Source of the DNA: Macrostomum hystrix
Taxonomy: Eukaryota; Animalia; Platyhelminthes
DNA: 64,000 nucleotides
Assembly (NCBI GenBank): GCA_950097015.1
Contig: CATNEN010000029.1
Span: 3,472,001 to 3,536,000, forward strand
Direction of reading: 5' to 3'
Position numbers and translations under genes: made by a program. This document shows positions 12,192 to 59,100 of this stretch, one piece after another (the first letter of the stretch is position 1; every line of letters begins with the position of its first letter). The notes under the pieces are model-generated. The model worked only from the letters and a program-made list of their open reading frames with translations, was not told the DNA's origin and ran no database searches.

Positions 12192-27227
<15,036 letters not shown>

Positions 27228-47103: not shown

Positions 47104-50100
47104 ATGGCTGATAACGTTGAGTCAAGTTACGATGCTCAAAGAGAATACCAGCAAGAGCAGGTTGCTGATTCTGGTGAGCTTCGCCAGAGAAAGGTAAATA
47201 TGTAAATATAGGTTTTATTTCTGTGTTCTATGAAACTATATATATATATTTACTATCTGATATTGTCCCTTCTGAATATATAGTTATAATTACAGATAAT
47301 TAGTAACTAGTATTTTTGTAATTTATGAGCTCTAGCAAAGTAAAATTCATGTAGGTACTTTATTTAACTGTATGGTCTTCATGAATTCTGGTCAATTAAG
47401 AAATAGTAAACTGGGTAATAACTGTTTGGTATTTAGCTATCTATAATTAACCAGTTACTAGTTATTACTTGTTAGAATGTTAACTCCCCTAAGTATTAAA
47501 TGCAATATGCATATTAAGGTCCTAAGTTAAATGTAGTATATATTAGTATATACAATAGTAAATATCTCTTTAGTTAATAACCTAGTGTGCTTTTTGTATA
47601 TTTTTTGTAATACATTTACTAACTAAGCAGATCTAGCTAATGTTCTGTAGCATACTTTTTCATAATTTATTGTTCACCTAGCCTGAAAAGTATTAACTGT
47701 AGTCACTAGTCTACTTATTTGACCTAATATTGTTCTAATATTTTGTAAGTTAAAATTACTCAGTTTTGGGCATAGGTCTGATACTCTGATAGTATTGCCA
47801 ATATCGAAGTATTGGACCTTGATACCTTTTTCTCAGTATTTGACCTTGGTATTGAGCAATACATTTTCTAAGTTCAATAATCCAATTCATTTAATTTAAT
47901 AGTAATAAATTTTGTTCTTTGTACTAAAAAGCCTAGAAAGGATTAAAAAAAGTAACAAAAATACAAAAGCATGTTGTCTACTGATGATGATTTCATTTAT
48001 GTTGATGATGCTTCTATGACTGTTTCTACCACTAGCACAATAGGCCAAAGTCTGCCTAATCAAGAAAATCTAATTGTGGCACTGCCAAACTTATAATATT
48101 TTGCCCATTTAATCTTCTTCGCTGGTCAGCCACATCTCACTAGAGTCTTTAGTGTCTAAAAAAAGTAGCTAAGAGCTTTTTCTTCATTTTTGGCTTGATA
48201 GATGCAGAAAACACAAAAAATGATGTATCGGACCATTTATTGGAATAAAGTATTGCGCAATACTCAAATTTTGGTATCGGACCAACAAATATTGCCTATA
48301 CCTTTTAGAGAATTGGTATGGGAGTATCACTTTAAAGCGATACTTTGTTAAAGTATTGCACCCAACACTGAAAATACTATTTTACTACAGTATAAAATAA
48401 AATTTGTCTGGCTGTATTGAATCATTTATCAAAAGGAAAATCTTTTTCATGCATTTTATTTACAATTAACAACTCATGCTAGCTGCTCATAAATATCCCA
48501 AGGTTGCCACCCAAGCTGCTGCTGCTGATGATGGCGATGCTGCCACTGTGGAAGACGAAGCCACTGCGCCTGTCGATCCAGCTGTGGCGCAGTCCATTGG
48601 GCAGGGCACAGACCAGTCGCCCGGAATTCTTCAGCGCCTGCTGGCACCGCTGCCACCGCGCTGGCAGAACTGGGTGGTGCGCGGCATCATGAGCGTTGTC
48701 ATGATTAGCATCTTCTCTATTATCGTCTATTTGGGACCCCTGGCCATGGTTGTGCTGGTAAGTTATTGTACTGAAGTATCGGGGTGTAGCTGTGACAACT
48801 GACTCACTGAAGTATCGGGGTGTAGCTGTGACAACTGACTCACTGAAGTATCGGGGTGTAGCTGTGACAACTGACTCACTGAAGTATCGGGGTGTAGCTG
48901 TGACAACTGACTCAATTAATTATCAGTGTGTAGCTGTGACAACTGACTCACTGAAGTATCGGGGTGTAGCTGTGACAACTGACTCAATTAATTATCAGTG
49001 TGTAGCTGTGACAACTGACTCAATTAATTATCAGTGTGTAGCTGTGACAACTGACTCAATTAATTATCAGTGTGTAGCTGTGACAACTGACTCAATGAAG
49101 TATCGGGGTGTAGCTGTGACAGTGCCTCGCACTGATGTCATCATACCTCAATCTACCAGAAGAGATGAAACCACATTTCAGATTCTGATCATCCAGATGA
49201 TGTGTTTTTACGAGATCATCAACATCGGCTACGTGGTGTACAAGAGCCAGGACCTGCCCTGGTTCCGCACCCTGAGCTGGTTCTTTCTGTTCACATCAAA
49301 TTATTTCTTCTTTGGCGAGAGTATGATCGATCAGTTCCGCATTCTGCTGCAGCGAGATGTGAGCCGACCTTCTGACTTGGCTAGAATAATTTCGGGTGTC
49401 GTTAAAGCAGACCACGGGAATAATTCAAATAGTCACATTATTTTTTATTTATCTAAAATATTTAACCAATCGTCATGAAAATCCAGATGGCGGACTTTTA
49501 CGAAAATCGGTCATTCGGTTTGGGAACAATCGTGAAGTAGGCAGTGGAGTAGAGTTTTGTAGAGTTCATTTCTAAAGTTAAAGCTATCTAGTTTGTCCCC
49601 GCCGTGCCTCCGCAAAAGTGTCTCTGGATAATTAAAATAGTGACCAATTTGGATTAAACGAATTGTAATCGACAAGATTTCTATTTCAAACTTTCAGCAA
49701 TTTCTGCAGCCGCTGCTAACCTATCACCGGTTTATCTCATTCTGCCTGTACTGCAGCGGCATTGTGGCATTCGTGGTCAGCCTAGTCAAGAAGCACTACC
49801 TGCAGCAATTCACATTGGTAAGTTTCTAATTTGAAAAGCACTATTTAAACGCAGACTATAGAGTTCGACCGACAAATATTCCCGTTTCCAGTTTGGCTGG
49901 ACGCACATGGCTCTGCTTGTACTGGTCACCTCGTCTCACTTCATGATTCGCAATGTCTTCAATGGCGTCATTTGGTTAGTGCCTGATTAAACAGCTTGCT
50001 TCTTTTCATTCAATCTCAATGTACCGTATGTAAGAACGGATAGACTTAGAGATTTACTGGAGTATCAGGGGAGCTGCTGACTTACTTGACTTATCTGCAG

Positions 50101-53100
50101 GGCGGTCCGACGGACGCAGCGGGGAGGCGGGAGTCGCCCATTCCGCTAATCCCTGAAAGACCCGCAATCGGCCGATGGCGCGGGGCCAGTCAGGGAGGTC
50201 CGTGTTCGGTCCTTCCTGCAGCTTGTTCCTCGCTGGGGAAGAAAGAGGCTCGTCTGGTAGCCCTTAGGAACCGGACGAGCCGCGGGATGTTCTCGGATCT
50301 GCAAACATCGTCCATGGATGGGTTTGGTCCGAGGTGATTAAGCCTCTCTCTGGTGAAGAAAGGGCAGTGGCAGACGAAGTGCAGGGCATCCTCGTCCTCA
50401 AGGTTGCAGAAAGGGCACAGCTCACTCCGGAGGTCTCCACGGAGGAAACAGTGTCTGGCGTAGCAGCCATGGCCCGTGAGGGTCATGGTGAGGGCCCGGA
50501 TGTCCTTCCGGGTCTGGTTCAGAAGGACCTTCCGGAGCCGAGCGGATGGCACTGGAACTGCCGCTTTGGATTGGCGGCAGTTAGTGGTGCTTCTCCACCG
50601 GGTAAGATGGAGGTTGGCAGTCCAATCATTAATCTGACGATAAATGACGGTGCTCGGAATCGGAGCCGGGGGGAGGGGCCCGGCGCAGAGCTGGCTCCTC
50701 CCTGCTTGGCCAGGTGGTCAGCAAGCTCGTTACCAGGGAAACCGGCGTGCCCTGGTATCCACTGAAGTCTGACGGTATTTTTACCGGCCAGGTTATTGAG
50801 CTGCCGGACACAGTCGGAGACTGTCCGGGAGGTTGTGGTGGTGTGACAGAGGGCTTGCAGAGCAGCCTGACTGTCCGAGTGAAAGATGATAGTCCTGCCT
50901 GAGATGTTTTTCTCATTCAACTCCGCAGCGCAGGAGCTGATGGCCAGGACCTCGTTCTGGAAAACGCTCGAGGATTTTCCAGTGTGTTGGGCGTGTGTGG
51001 CGACAACACGTCCGTTGATAAGGATACAGACCCCGAAGCCAGCGGAGTCATCCTTCATGGATCCGTCCGTGTAGCAGTGGACCTCCTGGGTGTTCCAGTG
51101 GTCGCTAACTTGGTCCCTGGTGGGGATGAGAACCTTAAAGCGCTGAAGGAGGTTGAGCGAGCACGGTTCACCGTCCGTAAGGACATTGATTCCGTTGCTC
51201 GTACCCAAGTCTCTCAGGCAAAGGTCCGTGTGCGGCAGGAGCTTTCGCTTCGCTGCCGCTCGTTGGGGGACGAAGCGCACACCGGCATCAAGGAGACGCC
51301 GGGCGGTTTTTGCCGCCTCCCCGCGGATAAAGATATCGAGCGGGAGGATGTTCAAGAAGGCGTTGAGGCCATCGAAGGGGGCGGATGGCGGGGCGCTCAT
51401 GATCGTTCGACATGCGCGACCTTGCACTCTCCGAAGAGTCTCATGGCAGGTCTTAAGCTGCAGGGCACTAGCCCAGATCAGTCCGGCGTACGAGACAGCC
51501 GGCCTGACCATAGCAGTGTAGATCCACCATAGACGTTTGGGGGTGAGACCCCACGTGTTGCCCACCGCCCTGCGCAGCTGCGCCAGGATCGCAAAGGCCT
51601 TTTTGGCTTTGGCATGGACATGAGGAGTCCAGCTGAGCCTGTGATCGAGCGTTATGCCCAGGCATTTAGTTTGCTTCTGGAAGGTGATGTCCTTTCCATA
51701 CAGCTGCAGGGGGCGAATATGCCATTTGTTTTTGCTGGTGAACATGATCGCCGCTGTCTTAGACTCGGAGAGCTTCAGACCGCAGCGAGTTGCCCATCTT
51801 TCGGCGTTGTTGATAAAGTTTTGCAGAAGGTCTCGCAGGGCCTCTGGTACCGGGCCAGATGCCACTGCCGTAACATCATCCGCATAGCCGACCTTTAGGA
51901 TGGGGTCTGGCTGAGAGTCTCGTAAGAGCTCGTCGATAACCATGTTCCAGAGAACTGGTGAGAGGACGCCGCCTTGTGGGCAACCTTTGCAGACAGTGAC
52001 CGTCCGCTGGTGTCCAAGAAGGTGTGCCGTAGCAGTGCGGTGGCGGACTATGTACATGATCCACCTCCTAAGATGCGAATGCGTGTGCCGCATACGTAGG
52101 GCCCTGTCAAACGCCTCGAAGAGAACGTTGTCGAAGGCCCCGTCAATATCCAGGAAGATGCTCAGGGCAAAGCCGTTCCCGAGGACGGCCTTTTCCAGAG
52201 CGTCCACCAGAGCGTGGAGAGCGCTTTCGGTGGAACGTCCCGACCGAAAGGCGTGTTGATTGCCGCTTAGTGGCATATTTTTCAGCTCCACAGAGAGGAG
52301 GCGCCAGAGCACCAATCTCTCCATCAGTTTGACCATGGTGGAGGTTAGGCTAATTGGCCGAAACGATTTAATGGAATGGTAGTCCGGGCGGCCTGGCTTG
52401 GGGATAAAAACCACCCTCGCCTCGGTCCATGCCTTCGGAACATACCCAAGCACAATGCAAGCCTTAAGGAGCTTGCAAAGATTAGTGAGGAAGCCATGGC
52501 ATTTTACCGCCTCGCGGATGAAGGCTGGTATAATGCCGTCCGGCCCCGGGGATTTGAAGGGTTTGAAAGACTGGGCTGCCTTGGTAACCCGGTCTTCAGT
52601 AATGATGGACGTCGCAAGGATATGACCTCCCTCGGTGTGATCCGGGGGGTCTGTCCCTGCTGGCACGCTGGGGAAAAAGGCTGTGAGCATAGTGTCGAGC
52701 GTTTCCCCAGGGTTCTCGGTGGGTCGGCCATCGGCCTTCCTCACCGTCGAAAGCTTGGACATTTTGTCCAGCGTGAGGGCTTTGACAATTCTGGAGGTGG
52801 GGCGAGTGCCCTCAAGCTCCTCACAGTATTGCCGCCACTTGCTGTTTTTGGCGTTTCTGACTTCCTTCTTGAAGCTATGGATGGCTTCGAGATACGCAGC
52901 CTGATCAGCCGGGTTTTTTGTCTTCGTGGCCCTGCGGTGCAGCCGCTTCGCCGTTCGACGGAGCTCGCCGAGCTGCGGATTCCACCATGGGGCCGAAGTT
53001 TTGCCTCTGTAAGCTTTGAGGGGGCAGGAGGCCTCGAAGGCGGTGGTCAGCGAGTTGGTGAGAAACTCAGCTAGCTCATCCGCTTCATCGCAGGTGTTGG

Positions 53101-56100
53101 CGGGGGGGCTGAGGTTCCGTTGGGTTCCTTCGAGGCTATACCTGAAGGCTTCCCAATCGGTATTCCTAGCGTTCCTTTTCCAAGTGATCTGGTTAGTGCA
53201 GCGTGCACCCGCCAGTTGGAAAGAGATGTATTTGTGATCGGAGAGGGAGGTCTCCGGCAGAACCTGCCACTCCCTAAGGCTCTGGTAGAGCCCAGGTGTG
53301 GCTAGAGTGGCGTCGATGACCTCAGACCATCGTCCATTGTCAAATGTCGGGGTGCTCCCTGTGTTGCAGAACTCCAGAGGCGTGGTTAGGATGTAGGCAA
53401 GGAGGTCCTCGCCTCTCGAGTTAATGTCAGAGCTCCCCCAGTGGGTGTGGTGGGCGTTTATATCGCCAGCCACCATGAGCTCATAGTTTTTGGTAGCGCA
53501 GGTTTCAGTCAGAGAGATCAGCTCCTCAGGGACTGCCGGCCTGTCGCCCGGTAAATAAACCGAGGCGATTAAGACGGTTTTGCCTGGGAGGATGCTCTCC
53601 GTCTGGATGACACAGGTGTCCCGATCAGAAAGGTCGGGTCTGTACCAGGCGTTGAGGGAGTCTCTCACGAGGATGCACGCCCTGGGATTTTGGTTCTCCC
53701 GGTGACGGCTGTTGTAGAAGCAGTGATACCCATTGGGTACATTTTGAGGCTTACCTTTATGAGTCCACGGCTCCTGGACGAGGATGAGACCCGGCGTGTT
53801 GAGCTCGACATAGCGCATCAGATTGACGGATGCAGCTATGCAGTGTTGCAGGTTGACCTGCAGGCAGGTAGTCCCAGTCTGGCCGATCATGGTCCAGCGG
53901 GAGACTCCTTGAGCAGCTCGTCCTCCTCAGACGGGGTCGGGCTGCAGACCTCCATGAGTAGCGGCGCGCCCGCATCCGCTGTGGAGGGAACGGCGGGAAT
54001 CGCTGCGGAAAGCTGCTGCTCTGACCGCTGCGTGTCCCGGCCGCTCCACCCAACAACGGTGCAGTCGCTGCCATCACTCGACGCCTCGCTCTCGGGGGTC
54101 GGGTCCGTGTGGATGGCGGCCTCCTTCCAGTGAGGGAGATCCTCAGACCAGTCGGTGGCCACCGCTCCGTGGGTCCCGGCACTCTGCGGCTGGCTAGGGG
54201 GGGAGGAGGTTTGCGCTTTTGCAGCGCGGGAGCGCTCCAGGTGCTCTTTGAGCGCCCGGGCTTCGCTGAGCGCCCGCAAGACCAGGCCCGATTTGCGGTT
54301 GTTGCGGGCTGGTCTACGATCTCGGGGGCCGGATTCGGCGACGCGGATATTTTTGCCCGGGCGGGGGTCTACGGACGTCGCATGCCGCTTAGCTGGCGGA
54401 GCTTTCGCCCCAGGGCCAGGAGCGGTCCGCTTGTTTTCCGGTCCCTCCCCGGCCTTCCTCTCCTGACAATCCAGGATGGTCAGCGGGTAGAGTCCCGGTT
54501 TGATAACGCTCTTGTGAGGGATCCTTTTGGACCAGGCTTCGGAGAAGCCGTAGATCGCCGTGAAACCCTCCGCTCCTTTGCGGACGGTCTCGTGGCAGAT
54601 CAGCCCGGAGGCTGGGAGGTCCGGGTTCATCTTCAGCAGCAGCTGCCGAAGTTGGTCCCCGGACCGGATTGAGCAGGCGTCGGGGACCCAGACGCGATGG
54701 CGTCGGGTCCGTGGACGCTCAGACTCGGTGGTGCACCTCAGTCTTCCGACATCGGTGCTCCACTTGAAATCTTTGATCCGATCGCGCAGTAGACGGCTAT
54801 CCCCGGCCGATTTGCACCAGAGGAGGACAGCCCCCTCCTGCGCTTCAGACCTGACAACGCTGACTGGTGTCCCAGCCAGTGCCAGGTCCGTGAGGCCCTC
54901 GTCGATGGTTTTGAGCATGCTCTTGAGCTGCTCGTCCGAGAGGTCCTGTTCCTCGCCGACCACAATGATGGCCGGCTGGGCAGGCTCCCGCTTGGCTTTG
55001 GAGGCGTAAGTCTCCTTGGCCTTGCTGGCGTTGGACGTGCCGGCCTTGTGAGTGGTGGTGGCCGTGATGGCGCTGGGGGCGGCGGCTCCAGAAGGCCCTG
55101 CTGCGCCTTCCACGCTCTTCCCATCGGCGTCGGTGCTGGCCTTGGAGATGGTGATGGCCGGCGCGGCGGTGGGGGCGGCGGATCCAGGTGGCCCGGCCGC
55201 ATTTTTCGCACCCGCCTCCTGTGCAGGTGTCGGGCGCCCACCAGTCGCAGCCGCCGCAGCATTGCGGCGGCGTTCGTTGCGCTTCTGGTTGCGCCTAGCA
55301 CGCGCTTCCTCCGAGCGTTTGCGGCTCGGGTTGCGCTTATTTTGGTCGACGATTCCGGTGGCGGGATTCTCAGACCCACCGGCTACACCGAGGACGTGGG
55401 ACCTGCCAGTGGCAGCGTCCGGAGCGGCCGAGTTTTCGGTTTCGATTGAAGAAATGGGCGAGGCCATGGCTGAAAAGCGGGTGGGGGGCTGCTCGTTAAC
55501 GAGTGAGAAAAGCCCGACTGGCCGACACCCCAAGCCAGCCGGGAGCAACAGAGAGAGTGAAACACCGTTAGCGGCTGGAATACTCCCCAGCCAAAGCGCG
55601 GACCAAGGTCCGGCAAACGCCCAACAGCACGGATGCACTGGGGACATTAGAGGGCACCAAATGGCCGGAAACCGGGGCCTGCGGAGCTGGCCGCATACCC
55701 TGTTAAGGTCGAAGGGTGACACCTTTCCCTCAGAGCCGTAGCCAGAGGTACCTGATCACGCACAGGTGCACGAACGCTGCGGACTGGCCGCATACCCTGT
55801 TAAGGTCGAAGGGTGACACCTTTTCCTCAGAGCCGTAGCCAGAGGTACCTGATCACGCACAGGTGCACGAACGCTGCGGACTGGCCGCATTCCCTGTTAA
55901 GGTCGAAGGGTGACACCTTTCCCTCAGAGCTGTAGCCAGAGGTACCTGATCACGCACAGGTGCACGAACGCTGCGGACTGGCCGCATACCCTGTAAAGGT
56001 CAGAGGGTGACACCTTTCCCTCCAGCCGGGGCTAGAGGTACCCAGTTTGGCCAGAGGCCCTGGATGGGTCATCCAGCGCTGTTGCCCATTCTGTCCGGCA

Positions 56101-59100
56101 GCCCTAGGGTCAGCCTTGAACACTCGCGGGACGTGTACCCATGGGTCAGCTGACGGGACAGCGTGGAGGGATTCCTGCACCCGAAGGCACAGGGCTCCTT
56201 CCTGCCAGGCCTGCTCAAAAAGCGACTGAAGGTATGAGGCATCGCAGACCTTAGCCCGTGGGCCTGGTCTGACTCATACCTCACAGGCGCTGTGTCCCGC
56301 CGGTGCGAGCGGGGGGGGGAGCTGCTGACACACTGGAGTATCAGGGGAGCTGCTGGCACACTGGAGTATCAGGGGAGCTGCTGACACACTGGGGTATCAG
56401 GGGAGCTGCTGACACACTGGAGTATCAGGGGAGCTGCTGACACACTGGGGTATTAGGGGAGCTGCTGGCACACTGGAGTATCAGGGGAGCTGCTGACACA
56501 CTGGGGTATCAGGGGAGCTGCTGACACACTGGAGTATCAGGGGAGCTGCTGACACACTGGGGTATCAGGGGAGCTGCTGACACACTGGAGTATCAGGGGA
56601 GCTGCTGACACACTGGAGTATCAGGGGAGCTGCTGACACACTGGAGTATCAGGGGAGCTGCTGACACACTGGGGTATCAGGGGAGCTGCTGGCACACTGG
56701 AGTATCAGGGGAGCTGCTGACACACTGGGGTATCAGGGGAGCTGCTGACACACTGGAGTATCAGGGGAGCTGCTGACACACTGGGGTATCAGGGGAGCTG
56801 CTGACACACTGGAGTATCAGGGGAGCTGCTGACACAGGCGTATCAGCTGCTGACACAGGCGTATCAGCTGCTGACACAGGCGTATCAGCTGCTGACACAG
56901 GCGTATCAGCTGCTGACACAGGCGTATCAGCTGCTGACACAGGCGTATCAGCTGCTGACACACTGGAGTATCAGGGGAGCTGCTGACACACTGGAGTATC
57001 AGGGGAGCTGCTGACACACTGGGGTATCAGGGGAGCTGCTGGCACACTGGAGTATCAGGGGAGCTGCTGACACACTGGGGTATCAGGGGAGCTGCTGACA
57101 CACTGGAGTATCAGGGGAGCTGCTGACACACTGGGGTATCAGGGGAGCTGCTGACACACTGGAGTATCAGGGGAGCTTCTGACACACTGGAGTATCAGGG
57201 GAGCTGCTGACACACTGGGGTATCAGGGGAGCTGCTGGCACACTGGAGTATCAGGGGAGCTGCTGACACACTGGGGTATCAGGGGAGCTGCTGACACACT
57301 GGAGTATCAGGGGAGCTGCTGACACACTGGGGTATCAGGGGAGCTGCTGACACACTGGAGTATCAGGGGAGCTTCTGACACACTGGAGTATCAGGGGAGC
57401 TGCTGACACAGGCGTATCAGCTGCTGACACAGGCGTATCAGCTGCTGACACAGGCGTATCAGCTGCTGACACAGGCGTATCAGCTGCTGACACACTGGAG
57501 TATCAGGGGAGCTGCTGACACACTGGAGTATCAGGGGAGCTGCTGACACACAGGAGTATCAGGGGAGCTTCTGACACAGGAGTATCAGGGAAGCTACAAC
57601 AATGTTAAATTGCTAGCAAGGTGCACTCTCACATAAACTTCCTCTGCGACACTTGAAGGCTGCTACTGCCATCTTCCATGATCATCTGCAACGACATCAT
57701 GGCGTACATGTTCGGCTTCTTCTTCGGCAAGACGCCCCTAATAAAACTGTCACCGAAGAAGACCTGGGAAGGCTTCATCGGCGGCGGCCTCTCGACCATT
57801 GTATTCAGCGTACTGCTGAGCAACTTTCTCATCCAGTTCGACTGCTTCGTCTGCCCACTAGAGTACGATGAAGTCAGCGACGCTGTCAGCCTCAACTGCG
57901 TCCGCCACTGGATCTTCGAGCGCTCCACCTTTCACATTCCGGTTGTTGGCAAACTGGTGAGCCCTGGTGCAGTGTGTGCTACTGCAGTCAGCTGAATGTG
58001 TGCAGTGTGTGCTACTGCAGTCAGCTGAATGTGTGCAGTGTGTGCTACTGCAGTCAGCTCAGTGTGTGCAGTGTGTGCTACTGCAGTCAGCTCAGTGTGT
58101 GCAGTGTGTGCTACTGCAGTCAGCTCAATGTGTGCAGTGTGTGCTACTGCAGTCAGCTCAGTGTGTGCAGTGTGTGCTACTGCAGTCAGCTCAGTGTGTG
58201 CAGTGTGTGCTACTGCAGTCAGCTCAGTGTGTGCAGTGTGTGCTACTGCAGTCAGCTGAATGTGTGCAGTGTGTGCTACTGCAGTCAGCTCAGTGTGTGC
58301 AGTGTGTGCTACTGCAATCAGCTGAATGTGTGCAGTGTGTGCTACTGCAGTCAGCTGAATGTGTGCAGTGTGTGCTACTGCAGTCAGCTGAATGTGTGCA
58401 GTGTGTGCTACTGCAGTCAGCTGAATGTGTGCAGTGTGTGCTACTGCAGTCAGCTGAATGTGTGCAGTGTGTGCTACTGCAGTCAGCTGAATGTGTGCAG
58501 TGTGTGCTACTGCAGTCAGCTGAATGTGTGCAGTGTGTGCTACTGCAGTCAGCTGAATGTGTGCAGTGTGTGCTACTGCAGTCAGCTCAGTGTGTGCAGT
58601 GTGTGCTACTGCAATCAGCTGAATGTGTGCAGTGTGTGCTACTGCAGTCAGCTGAATGTGTGCAGTGTGTGCTACTGCAGTCAGCTGAATGTGTGCAGTG
58701 TGTGCTACTGCAGTCAGCTGAATGTGTGCAGTGTGTGCTACTGCAGTCAGCTGAATGTGTGCAGTGTGTGCTACTGCAGTCAGCTGAATGTGTGCAGTGT
58801 GTGCTACTGCAGTCAGCTCAGTGTGTGCAGTGTGTGCTACTGCAGTCAGCTCAGTGTGTGCTACTGCAGTCAGCTCAGTGTGTGCTACTGCAGTCAGCTC
58901 AGTGTGTGCTACTGCAGTCAGCTCAGTGTGTGCAGTGTGTGCTACTGCAGTCAGCTCAGTGTGTGCAGTGTGTGCTACTGCAGTCAGCTCAGTGTGTGCT
59001 ACTGCAGTCAGCTCAGTGTGTGCTACTGCAGTCAGCTCAGTGTGTGCAGTGTGTGCTACTGCAGTCAGCTCAGTGTGTGCAGTGTGTGCTACTGCAGTCA

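Follow-up and report, generated by a model that had tools for sequence, protein, structure and literature searches.

Fold at the 5' end of the E2 element

The window, a 64,000-nt stretch of Macrostomum hystrix contig CATNEN010000029.1, holds on its minus strand a long interspersed nuclear element (LINE), E2 (56310-50081), whose first 233 nt (56310-56078) are arranged as a hepatitis delta virus (HDV)-like ribozyme. The element has an open reading frame (ORF), ORF1 (minus strand, 53887-55722), with a weak match to PF16012, and downstream of it ORF2 (minus strand, 50247-53890), in which Pfam models identified an apurinic/apyrimidinic endonuclease (APE; PF03372/PF14529), a reverse transcriptase (PF00078) and a ribonuclease H (RNase H; PF00075). 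With ORF1 upstream, a three-domain ORF2 and target site duplications (TSDs), E2 falls among the RNase H-bearing LINEs of the I/ingi/LOA type, an assignment that holds at the level of type only. Judging from its sequence, we consider it likely that the 5' 233 nt of E2 RNA are an HDV-like ribozyme, predicted to cleave, that sets the 5' end of the LINE RNA.

We inspected the minus strand between 55900 and 56500 and indexed all positions by script. The paired (P), joining (J) and loop (L) regions occurred in the order P1, J1/2, P2, P3, L3, P3', P1', P1.1, P4, J4/2 and P2', which is the nested double pseudoknot of HDV-like ribozymes. P1 is formed by GCUCGC (56305-56310) and GCGAGU (56122-56127) and has 6 bp counted from G1, including a G1.U wobble, where 6-7 bp are expected; the element begins with G1 (56310), and cleavage is predicted between 56311 and 56310. 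P3 has the expected 3 bp, GGG (56140-56138) with CCC (56130-56128), and together with its loop L3, UACACGU (56137-56131), spans 56128-56140. P1.1 joins the second and third bases of L3 (A56136 and C56135) to U56120 and G56121, the GU half at 56120-56121. P2 (5' strand 56141-56150, 3' strand 56078-56089) consists of an outer helix, GCUG (56150-56147) with CAGC (56081-56078), and an inner helix, CCCAU (56145-56141) with AUGGG (56089-56085), separated by a bulged A on the 5' strand and a CAA loop on the 3' strand. J4/2 is CAGA (56090-56093), and the C at 56093, four bases before P2', is the candidate for the catalytic base, a role that is putative. All of these regions were found where the first-pass annotation of the window had placed them. 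The P4 hairpin that it described was also present (region 56094-56119, stem 56097-56115), though weak in E2 at -6.9 kcal/mol with one U.U mismatch and a bulge; a U-A pair replaces the mismatch in most other copies.

J1/2 is a peripheral, P1.2-like domain of 154 nt (56151-56304) attached through the linkers ACC and A. A 12-bp stem (56288-56301 with 56152-56163) closes it and encloses three internal hairpins. Both the closing stem and one UUCG loop agreed with the first description of this domain, which had counted two hairpins in about 160 nt.

To set a chance level for the fold we used a deliberately loose descriptor. It required P1 to have 6-7 bp, P3 3 bp and L3 6-8 nt; P1.1 needed one pair or more, P2 a minimum of 5 bp, and a C had to stand four positions ahead of P2'. 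A descriptor search had been called for when the ribozyme was first proposed, and it placed an HDV-like fold at base 1 in E2, in E1 (a second copy in the window) and in L052, a related element from outside this genome. When the first 331 nt of E2 were dinucleotide-shuffled 100,000 times, the descriptor, fixed at element base 1, matched 63 of the products; for L052, likewise over its first 331 nt, it matched 55 shuffles in 40,000. Without the anchor it gave 12 matches on both strands of the window (128 kb), two of which were E1 and E2. The descriptor alone is thus weak, and the match probability is low because P1 is anchored at base 1.

Exact 5' ends and compensatory changes

The genome searched comprised 220 Mb in 42 contigs. 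At least 40 near-identical copies of the 233-nt ribozyme were found, and a core 26-mer occurred 175 times with three mismatches or fewer, compared with no occurrence of the reversed control. Two covariance models, labelled R1 and R2, were run over the whole genome and all 150 scored matches belonged to the same family, so no diverged family was visible in the genome. Per-site variation among the copies was low and lay mostly in P4; it was left unused, since the selection of copies was biased with respect to P1.

The similarity between copies began at G1 in all 30 that were fetched, and their upstream flanks were unrelated to one another. A TSD of 10-14 bp abutted G1 with zero extra bases in 14-15 of the 16 copies fetched end to end, and the same was seen in E1, where the TSD TCATCTGTTAATA abuts G1. 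The E2 TSD is the 13-bp sequence TCAGCAGCUCCCC, present on the minus strand at 56316-56328 (5' copy) and at 50068-50080 (3' copy); the latter adjoins the 3' end of the element (...GUAAG, 50081), which is the same in E1 and other copies. The 5' copy is separated from G1 by five extra C (56311-56315). The boundary defined by the TSD, which had been said to coincide with the cut site, is therefore exact for the family but 5 nt off in E2 itself.

Two lineages from outside the genome, both reached through protein searches with ORF1 and ORF2, were compared with the family. L052, a Logan contig of 6492 nt, encodes an ORF2 62% identical to that of E2, and its base 1 is homologous to G1. It has P1 GCCUGC with P1' GCAGGC, L3 UCUCCGU, AG after P1', P2 CUCAGA/UCUGAG with outer P2 GCCG/CGGC, and an 11-bp P4 hairpin. 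L038, a JGI contig with a 5' untranslated region (UTR) 78-85% identical to that of the E2 family, has P2 CCCAAA/UUUGGG, outer P2 GCCG/CGGC, L3 UUCUCGU and a perfect 8-bp P4. The bases that precede P2 in L038 align with J1/2 and show the contig to be truncated within that domain, without the 5' strand of P1; for this reason we rejected the idea that L038, where GCUCGC directly precedes P2, has a minimal ribozyme.

In a structure-blind MAFFT alignment, both partners of P1 pairs 3-187 and 4-186 had changed in L052, and no P1 pair was broken. Both P1.1 pairs were doubly changed as well, C-G to U-A and A-U to C-G, with pairing kept. These double-change counts are free of model-fitting bias, and the covariation of P1 indicates that selection acts on the pairing of the RNA, including base 1. 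As judged from the aligned sequences, P2 and P4 are largely rewritten in L052 with their helices kept, and the sequence of P3 was invariant across the lineages compared. P4 stood in the same place with different letters, and its energy went from the E2 value through -9.5 (E1) and -14.8 (L038) to -24.0 kcal/mol (L052). The covariation test that had been proposed at the outset thus showed compensated helices in two outside lineages: P2 covaries with both L038 and L052, and P1 and P1.1, which make the pseudoknots, with L052. A relative that starts at the homologous G1 and keeps P1, P1.1, P2, P3 and P4 by compensatory change supports the HDV-like reading.

A covariance model built from the copies of this genome only had its best match at the predicted site in both outside lineages, scoring 54.6 bits for L038 and, with filters off, 20.9 bits for L052 (E about 1e-4). 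For the nested part of the structure, 94% of alignment cells were paired, compared with 23-52% once the partners had been shifted by 1-3 columns, and in four pairs both partners had changed; the 94% leans towards structure because the alignment was fitted to the covariance model. The L3 pattern U-N-N-N-C-G-U, which matches the CPEB3 consensus, was kept in E2, L038 and L052, and all three lineages had the L3 bases of the known reverse wobble (PMC3774820), a U as the first and a G as the sixth base. All three also had a C four bases before P2', within J4/2 sequences of CAGA (E2), CGUG and CUGC.

The consensus fold of J1/2 with L052 had 48 pairs, of which four were changed on both sides. A stretch of about 30 nt in this domain (window 56240-56275; L052:32-86), which forms a two-step hairpin, was nearly identical in L052, the rest of the domain having diverged; this stretch may serve for binding or for a tertiary contact. 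More distant ORF2 relatives (L057-L059, 34-37% identity; L053, 45%) had no similar 5' region and no descriptor match, and the L053 contig starts inside ORF1.

Predicted cleavage and rival explanations

If the 5' end of E2 acts as an HDV-like ribozyme, E2 would be transcribed inside a longer RNA and the ribozyme would cut just 5' of G1 (56310) by means of C56093 in J4/2. The cut would free a LINE RNA starting with G1, and target-primed reverse transcription to the end of this RNA would give new copies that start at G1 and adjoin the TSD. The J1/2 domain with its short linkers, together with the extended P2, would probably hold P1 and P2 together, as in Agam-2. The candidate ribozyme would be a natural explanation for the expression and the exact 5' end of about 175 young copies that have no obvious promoter, and for annotation it makes the start of the element placeable to the base. 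When the ribozyme was proposed, its 6-bp P1 had been contrasted with a usual 7 bp, and a J1/2 insert of about 160 nt had been described. A P1 of 6 or 7 bp is normal in HDV-like ribozymes (PMC4908430, PMC3774820), and the J1/2 of silkmoth R2 measures 216-498 nt, with a separation of P1 and P1' that can exceed 700 nt in R2 (PMC3774820), so both features of E2 lie inside the published range.

Several observations weigh against this reading. P4 is weak in E2, J4/2 is conserved only at its C (L038 and L052 do not fit C-N-R-A), and the G1.U wobble becomes G1-C in L052, the P1' of L038 likewise ending in C. The covariation comes from two lineages outside the genome, one of which (L038) is without its 5' end. 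Among the sequencing runs that contain the sequence, none is on record as RNA, and contigs from these runs continue through G1 into flanks that belong to other genomic copies, as expected of DNA from this species, which speaks neither for nor against cleavage. The Rfam HDV-type models (HDV, CPEB3 and drz) gave no match at E up to 10 on window positions 50-58 kb, L038 or L052, so the search with an HDV covariance model that had been suggested for the window came back empty there. This silence, though a negative result, weighs little, since those models do not score pseudoknots or a J1/2 of 154 nt. The variable J4/2 is not disqualifying, because R2 rigidly keeps only the catalytic C and four other positions (PMC3774820). 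The exact 5' end could also come from a fixed transcription start.

Such a start would be given by an internal RNA polymerase II promoter that initiates at G1, with the pseudoknotted fold being non-catalytic and used to bind the element's proteins, to let ribosomes enter internally or to protect the RNA end. A fixed start site also predicts a uniform 5' end abutting the TSD; a passage of PMC8501958 cites internal promoters as common in I/jockey-type LINEs, and the 98% conservation between subfamilies spans the whole 5' UTR of about 630 nt, beyond the ribozyme. The first 77 nt of L1Tc are both promoter and ribozyme (PMC3383444), and a promoter could likewise coexist with a ribozyme in E2. What sets this explanation back is that the HDV core features are kept (P1.1, L3 U...CGU, the C four bases before P2' and a P1 that runs from base 1), none of which a promoter or a protein site needs, and that the pairing of base 1 is under selection; we regard it as unlikely. 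The fold could otherwise be a relic, descended from a working HDV-like ribozyme that has lost cleavage owing to its 6-bp P1, weak P4 or non-canonical J4/2, with the element expressed in another way. J4/2 does differ between lineages, and in some naturally occurring HDV-like sequences a mismatched P1 abolishes activity (PMC3774820). Against this, the 175 core copies mark the family as young and abundant, its new copies still start exactly at G1, E2 has no broken core pair and the few positions held rigidly by R2 leave room for such variation, so that loss of cleavage is quite improbable. Chance resemblance within a GC-rich 5' UTR would account for the silence of Rfam and for the 10 other matches of the unanchored descriptor in 128 kb. 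Given an anchored probability of about 6 in 10,000 and the recurrence of the architecture, with compensatory changes and in the same place, in the diverged relative L052, we consider coincidence very improbable.

Other Rfam matches were rejected: those to isrG, to the microRNA family mir-1992 and to CRISPR families were chance matches, all on tandem repeats or hairpins, and the isrG and mir-1992 matches at 56316-57595 were artefacts of a 28-bp minisatellite. A first pattern scan of metagenomes gave no match, and the two matches of a second scan were both unrelated, prokaryote-like coding ends.

The shared 5' module, the LINE and comparable systems

The 5' end was more alike between copies than the rest of the element. 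E1 (window 16903-17321) was 95.5% identical to E2 over its first 419 nt, with ORFs at 71-73%, and in another subfamily the first ~630 nt, which hold the ribozyme and a set of 97-bp repeats, shared 98% identity with E2, with 63% for ORF1 and 74% for ORF2. The copies compared for this module were window 56310-55680 against L067, L069 and L062, and E1, with 5' identities of 95-98%. At least five ORF2 subfamilies adjoin the same ribozyme core. This pattern suggests that the 5' module was recently exchanged between LINE subfamilies, since a 98% identical 5' UTR beside ORFs at 63% and 74% fits a recent exchange of 5' ends, for example by template switching, better than common descent under selection. 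It is quite possible, if short of probable, that the ribozyme 5' UTR is a cassette mobile between LINE lineages, in which the nearly invariant J1/2 stretch may bind a protein or the ribosome; the folded 5' end might also have a further role in the stability or translation of the RNA. A 5' module common to diverged subfamilies bears on how LINE 5' ends evolve.

Internally deleted copies, L066 (1291 nt) and L072 (592 nt) and also L073 and L074, retained both ends of the element, the 5' one with the ribozyme, and were flanked by TSDs. By analogy with the short internally deleted elements (SIDEs) of R2, they are probably non-autonomous derivatives moved in trans.

E2 had been described as an intact LINE, which was not borne out: the homology of its ORF2 to P0003 switches frame near 50669-50708. 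The open frame of ORF2 has 1135 codons in E2, compared with 1245-1273 in five near-full-length copies that were fetched, and the frame shift leaves the last ~150 codons, with a Cys/His motif, out of frame. The nearest named proteins were UniRef entries of the flatworm Macrostomum lignano, with 55-78% identity over parts. Protein searches with ORF1 matched only P0001 and P0002, and the ORF1 of L052 led to one Macrostomum entry.

Downstream of the ribozyme, the 5' UTR carries a tandem repeat of 3.8 units of 97 bp (minus strand, 55679-56042), the unit number of which differs among copies. The longer copies ranged from 5984 to 6639 nt through the number of 97-bp units and internal deletions. A hairpin with the stem CUGGAU/AUCCAG lies directly 3' of the ribozyme (56078-56040) and is kept in L038:156-200. 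Upstream, the last unit of the 28-bp minisatellite (56316-57595, ~48 units with embedded arrays of a 21-bp variant) is the insertion site of E2.

HDV-like ribozymes are established at the 5' ends of LINEs such as R2, R4, Dong, baggins, RTE and L1Tc. Those of R4, Dong, baggins and L1Tc cleave at the element's own first base (PMC3774820, PMC3185411). The E2 family adds a well-supported HDV-like case in a dispersed, RNase H-bearing LINE, the kind of ribozyme being already known. R2 of Drosophila, Bombyx and other animals, like E2, belongs to the non-long terminal repeat elements and is headed by an HDV-like double pseudoknot, which in R2 frees the element RNA from a co-transcript, and it shares a P1 of 6-7 bp, a J1/2 of up to hundreds of nucleotides, a variable P4 and few fixed positions besides the catalytic C (PMC3774820). 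Its SIDEs are internally deleted, non-autonomous derivatives that retain the ribozyme (PMC3414825, PMC6765202), as the deleted copies of the E2 family do. R2 differs in having a restriction-like endonuclease, a single ORF, 28S rDNA as its only target and a cut that often lies upstream inside 28S, whereas E2 has an APE endonuclease, RNase H, two ORFs, insertions at many sites with TSDs of 10-14 bp and a predicted cut at its own first base.

The E2 layout is also that of drz-Agam-2 of Anopheles gambiae, in which a large paired J1/2 (P1.2) with short linkers and an extended P2 was demonstrated to accelerate cleavage by 'pinching' P1 and P2 together (PMC4908430). In Agam-2 the base-paired J1/2, short linkers and extended P2 make cleavage nearly three orders of magnitude faster (PMC4908430). 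The corresponding parts of E2 are its ACC and A linkers, its 12-bp closing stem and a P2 of 4 + 5 bp, and with E2 the 'pinch' model would gain a second natural case in which J1/2 is a large and structured domain. The two have no sequence similarity, and E2 differs in its three-hairpin J1/2 with a stretch nearly invariant between lineages, which hints at a further role of that stretch.

L1TcRz (Pr77) of Trypanosoma cruzi is likewise HDV-like and sits in the opening bases of a dispersed LINE that encodes APE, reverse transcriptase and RNase H, and its cleavage at the element's 5' end is co-transcriptional (PMC3185411, PMC4035085). It is compact (77 nt compared with 233 nt), doubles as an internal promoter and belongs to a protist with polycistronic transcription, whereas the host of E2 is animal-like. 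Among flatworms, the Perere-3 LINEs of Schistosoma mansoni are dispersed APE-type elements with TSDs and a 5' self-cleaving ribozyme (PMC8501958); this is a twister variant, not HDV-like, in another LINE clade. Schistosoma twister variants were the only flatworm LINE ribozymes found in the literature searched (PMC8501958), and that search found no paper joining HDV-like, ribozyme and Macrostomum.

The mammalian CPEB3 ribozyme (RF00622) differs from E2 by one base in L3 (UUCACGU compared with UACACGU) and shares GU after P1' and a C four bases before P2', its J4/2 CGAA having the same spacing of C to P2' as CAGA in E2. It is single-copy and intronic, with a 7-bp P1 and a short J1/2, and RF00622 had no match on window positions 50-58 kb. 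Two other, low-copy CPEB3-like candidates were observed elsewhere in the genome, at G000:C1:21386521-21386593 on the minus strand (L031:1501-1573; 34.3 bits) and at G000:C38:8568484-8568574 on the plus strand (L032:1501-1591; 30.3 bits), against an Rfam cut-off of 35. Each combines a long P4 domain with a 7-bp P1 and the L3 sequence UUCACGU, no large ORF lies close by, and compensatory changes set the P1 and P2 of one locus apart from those of the other.

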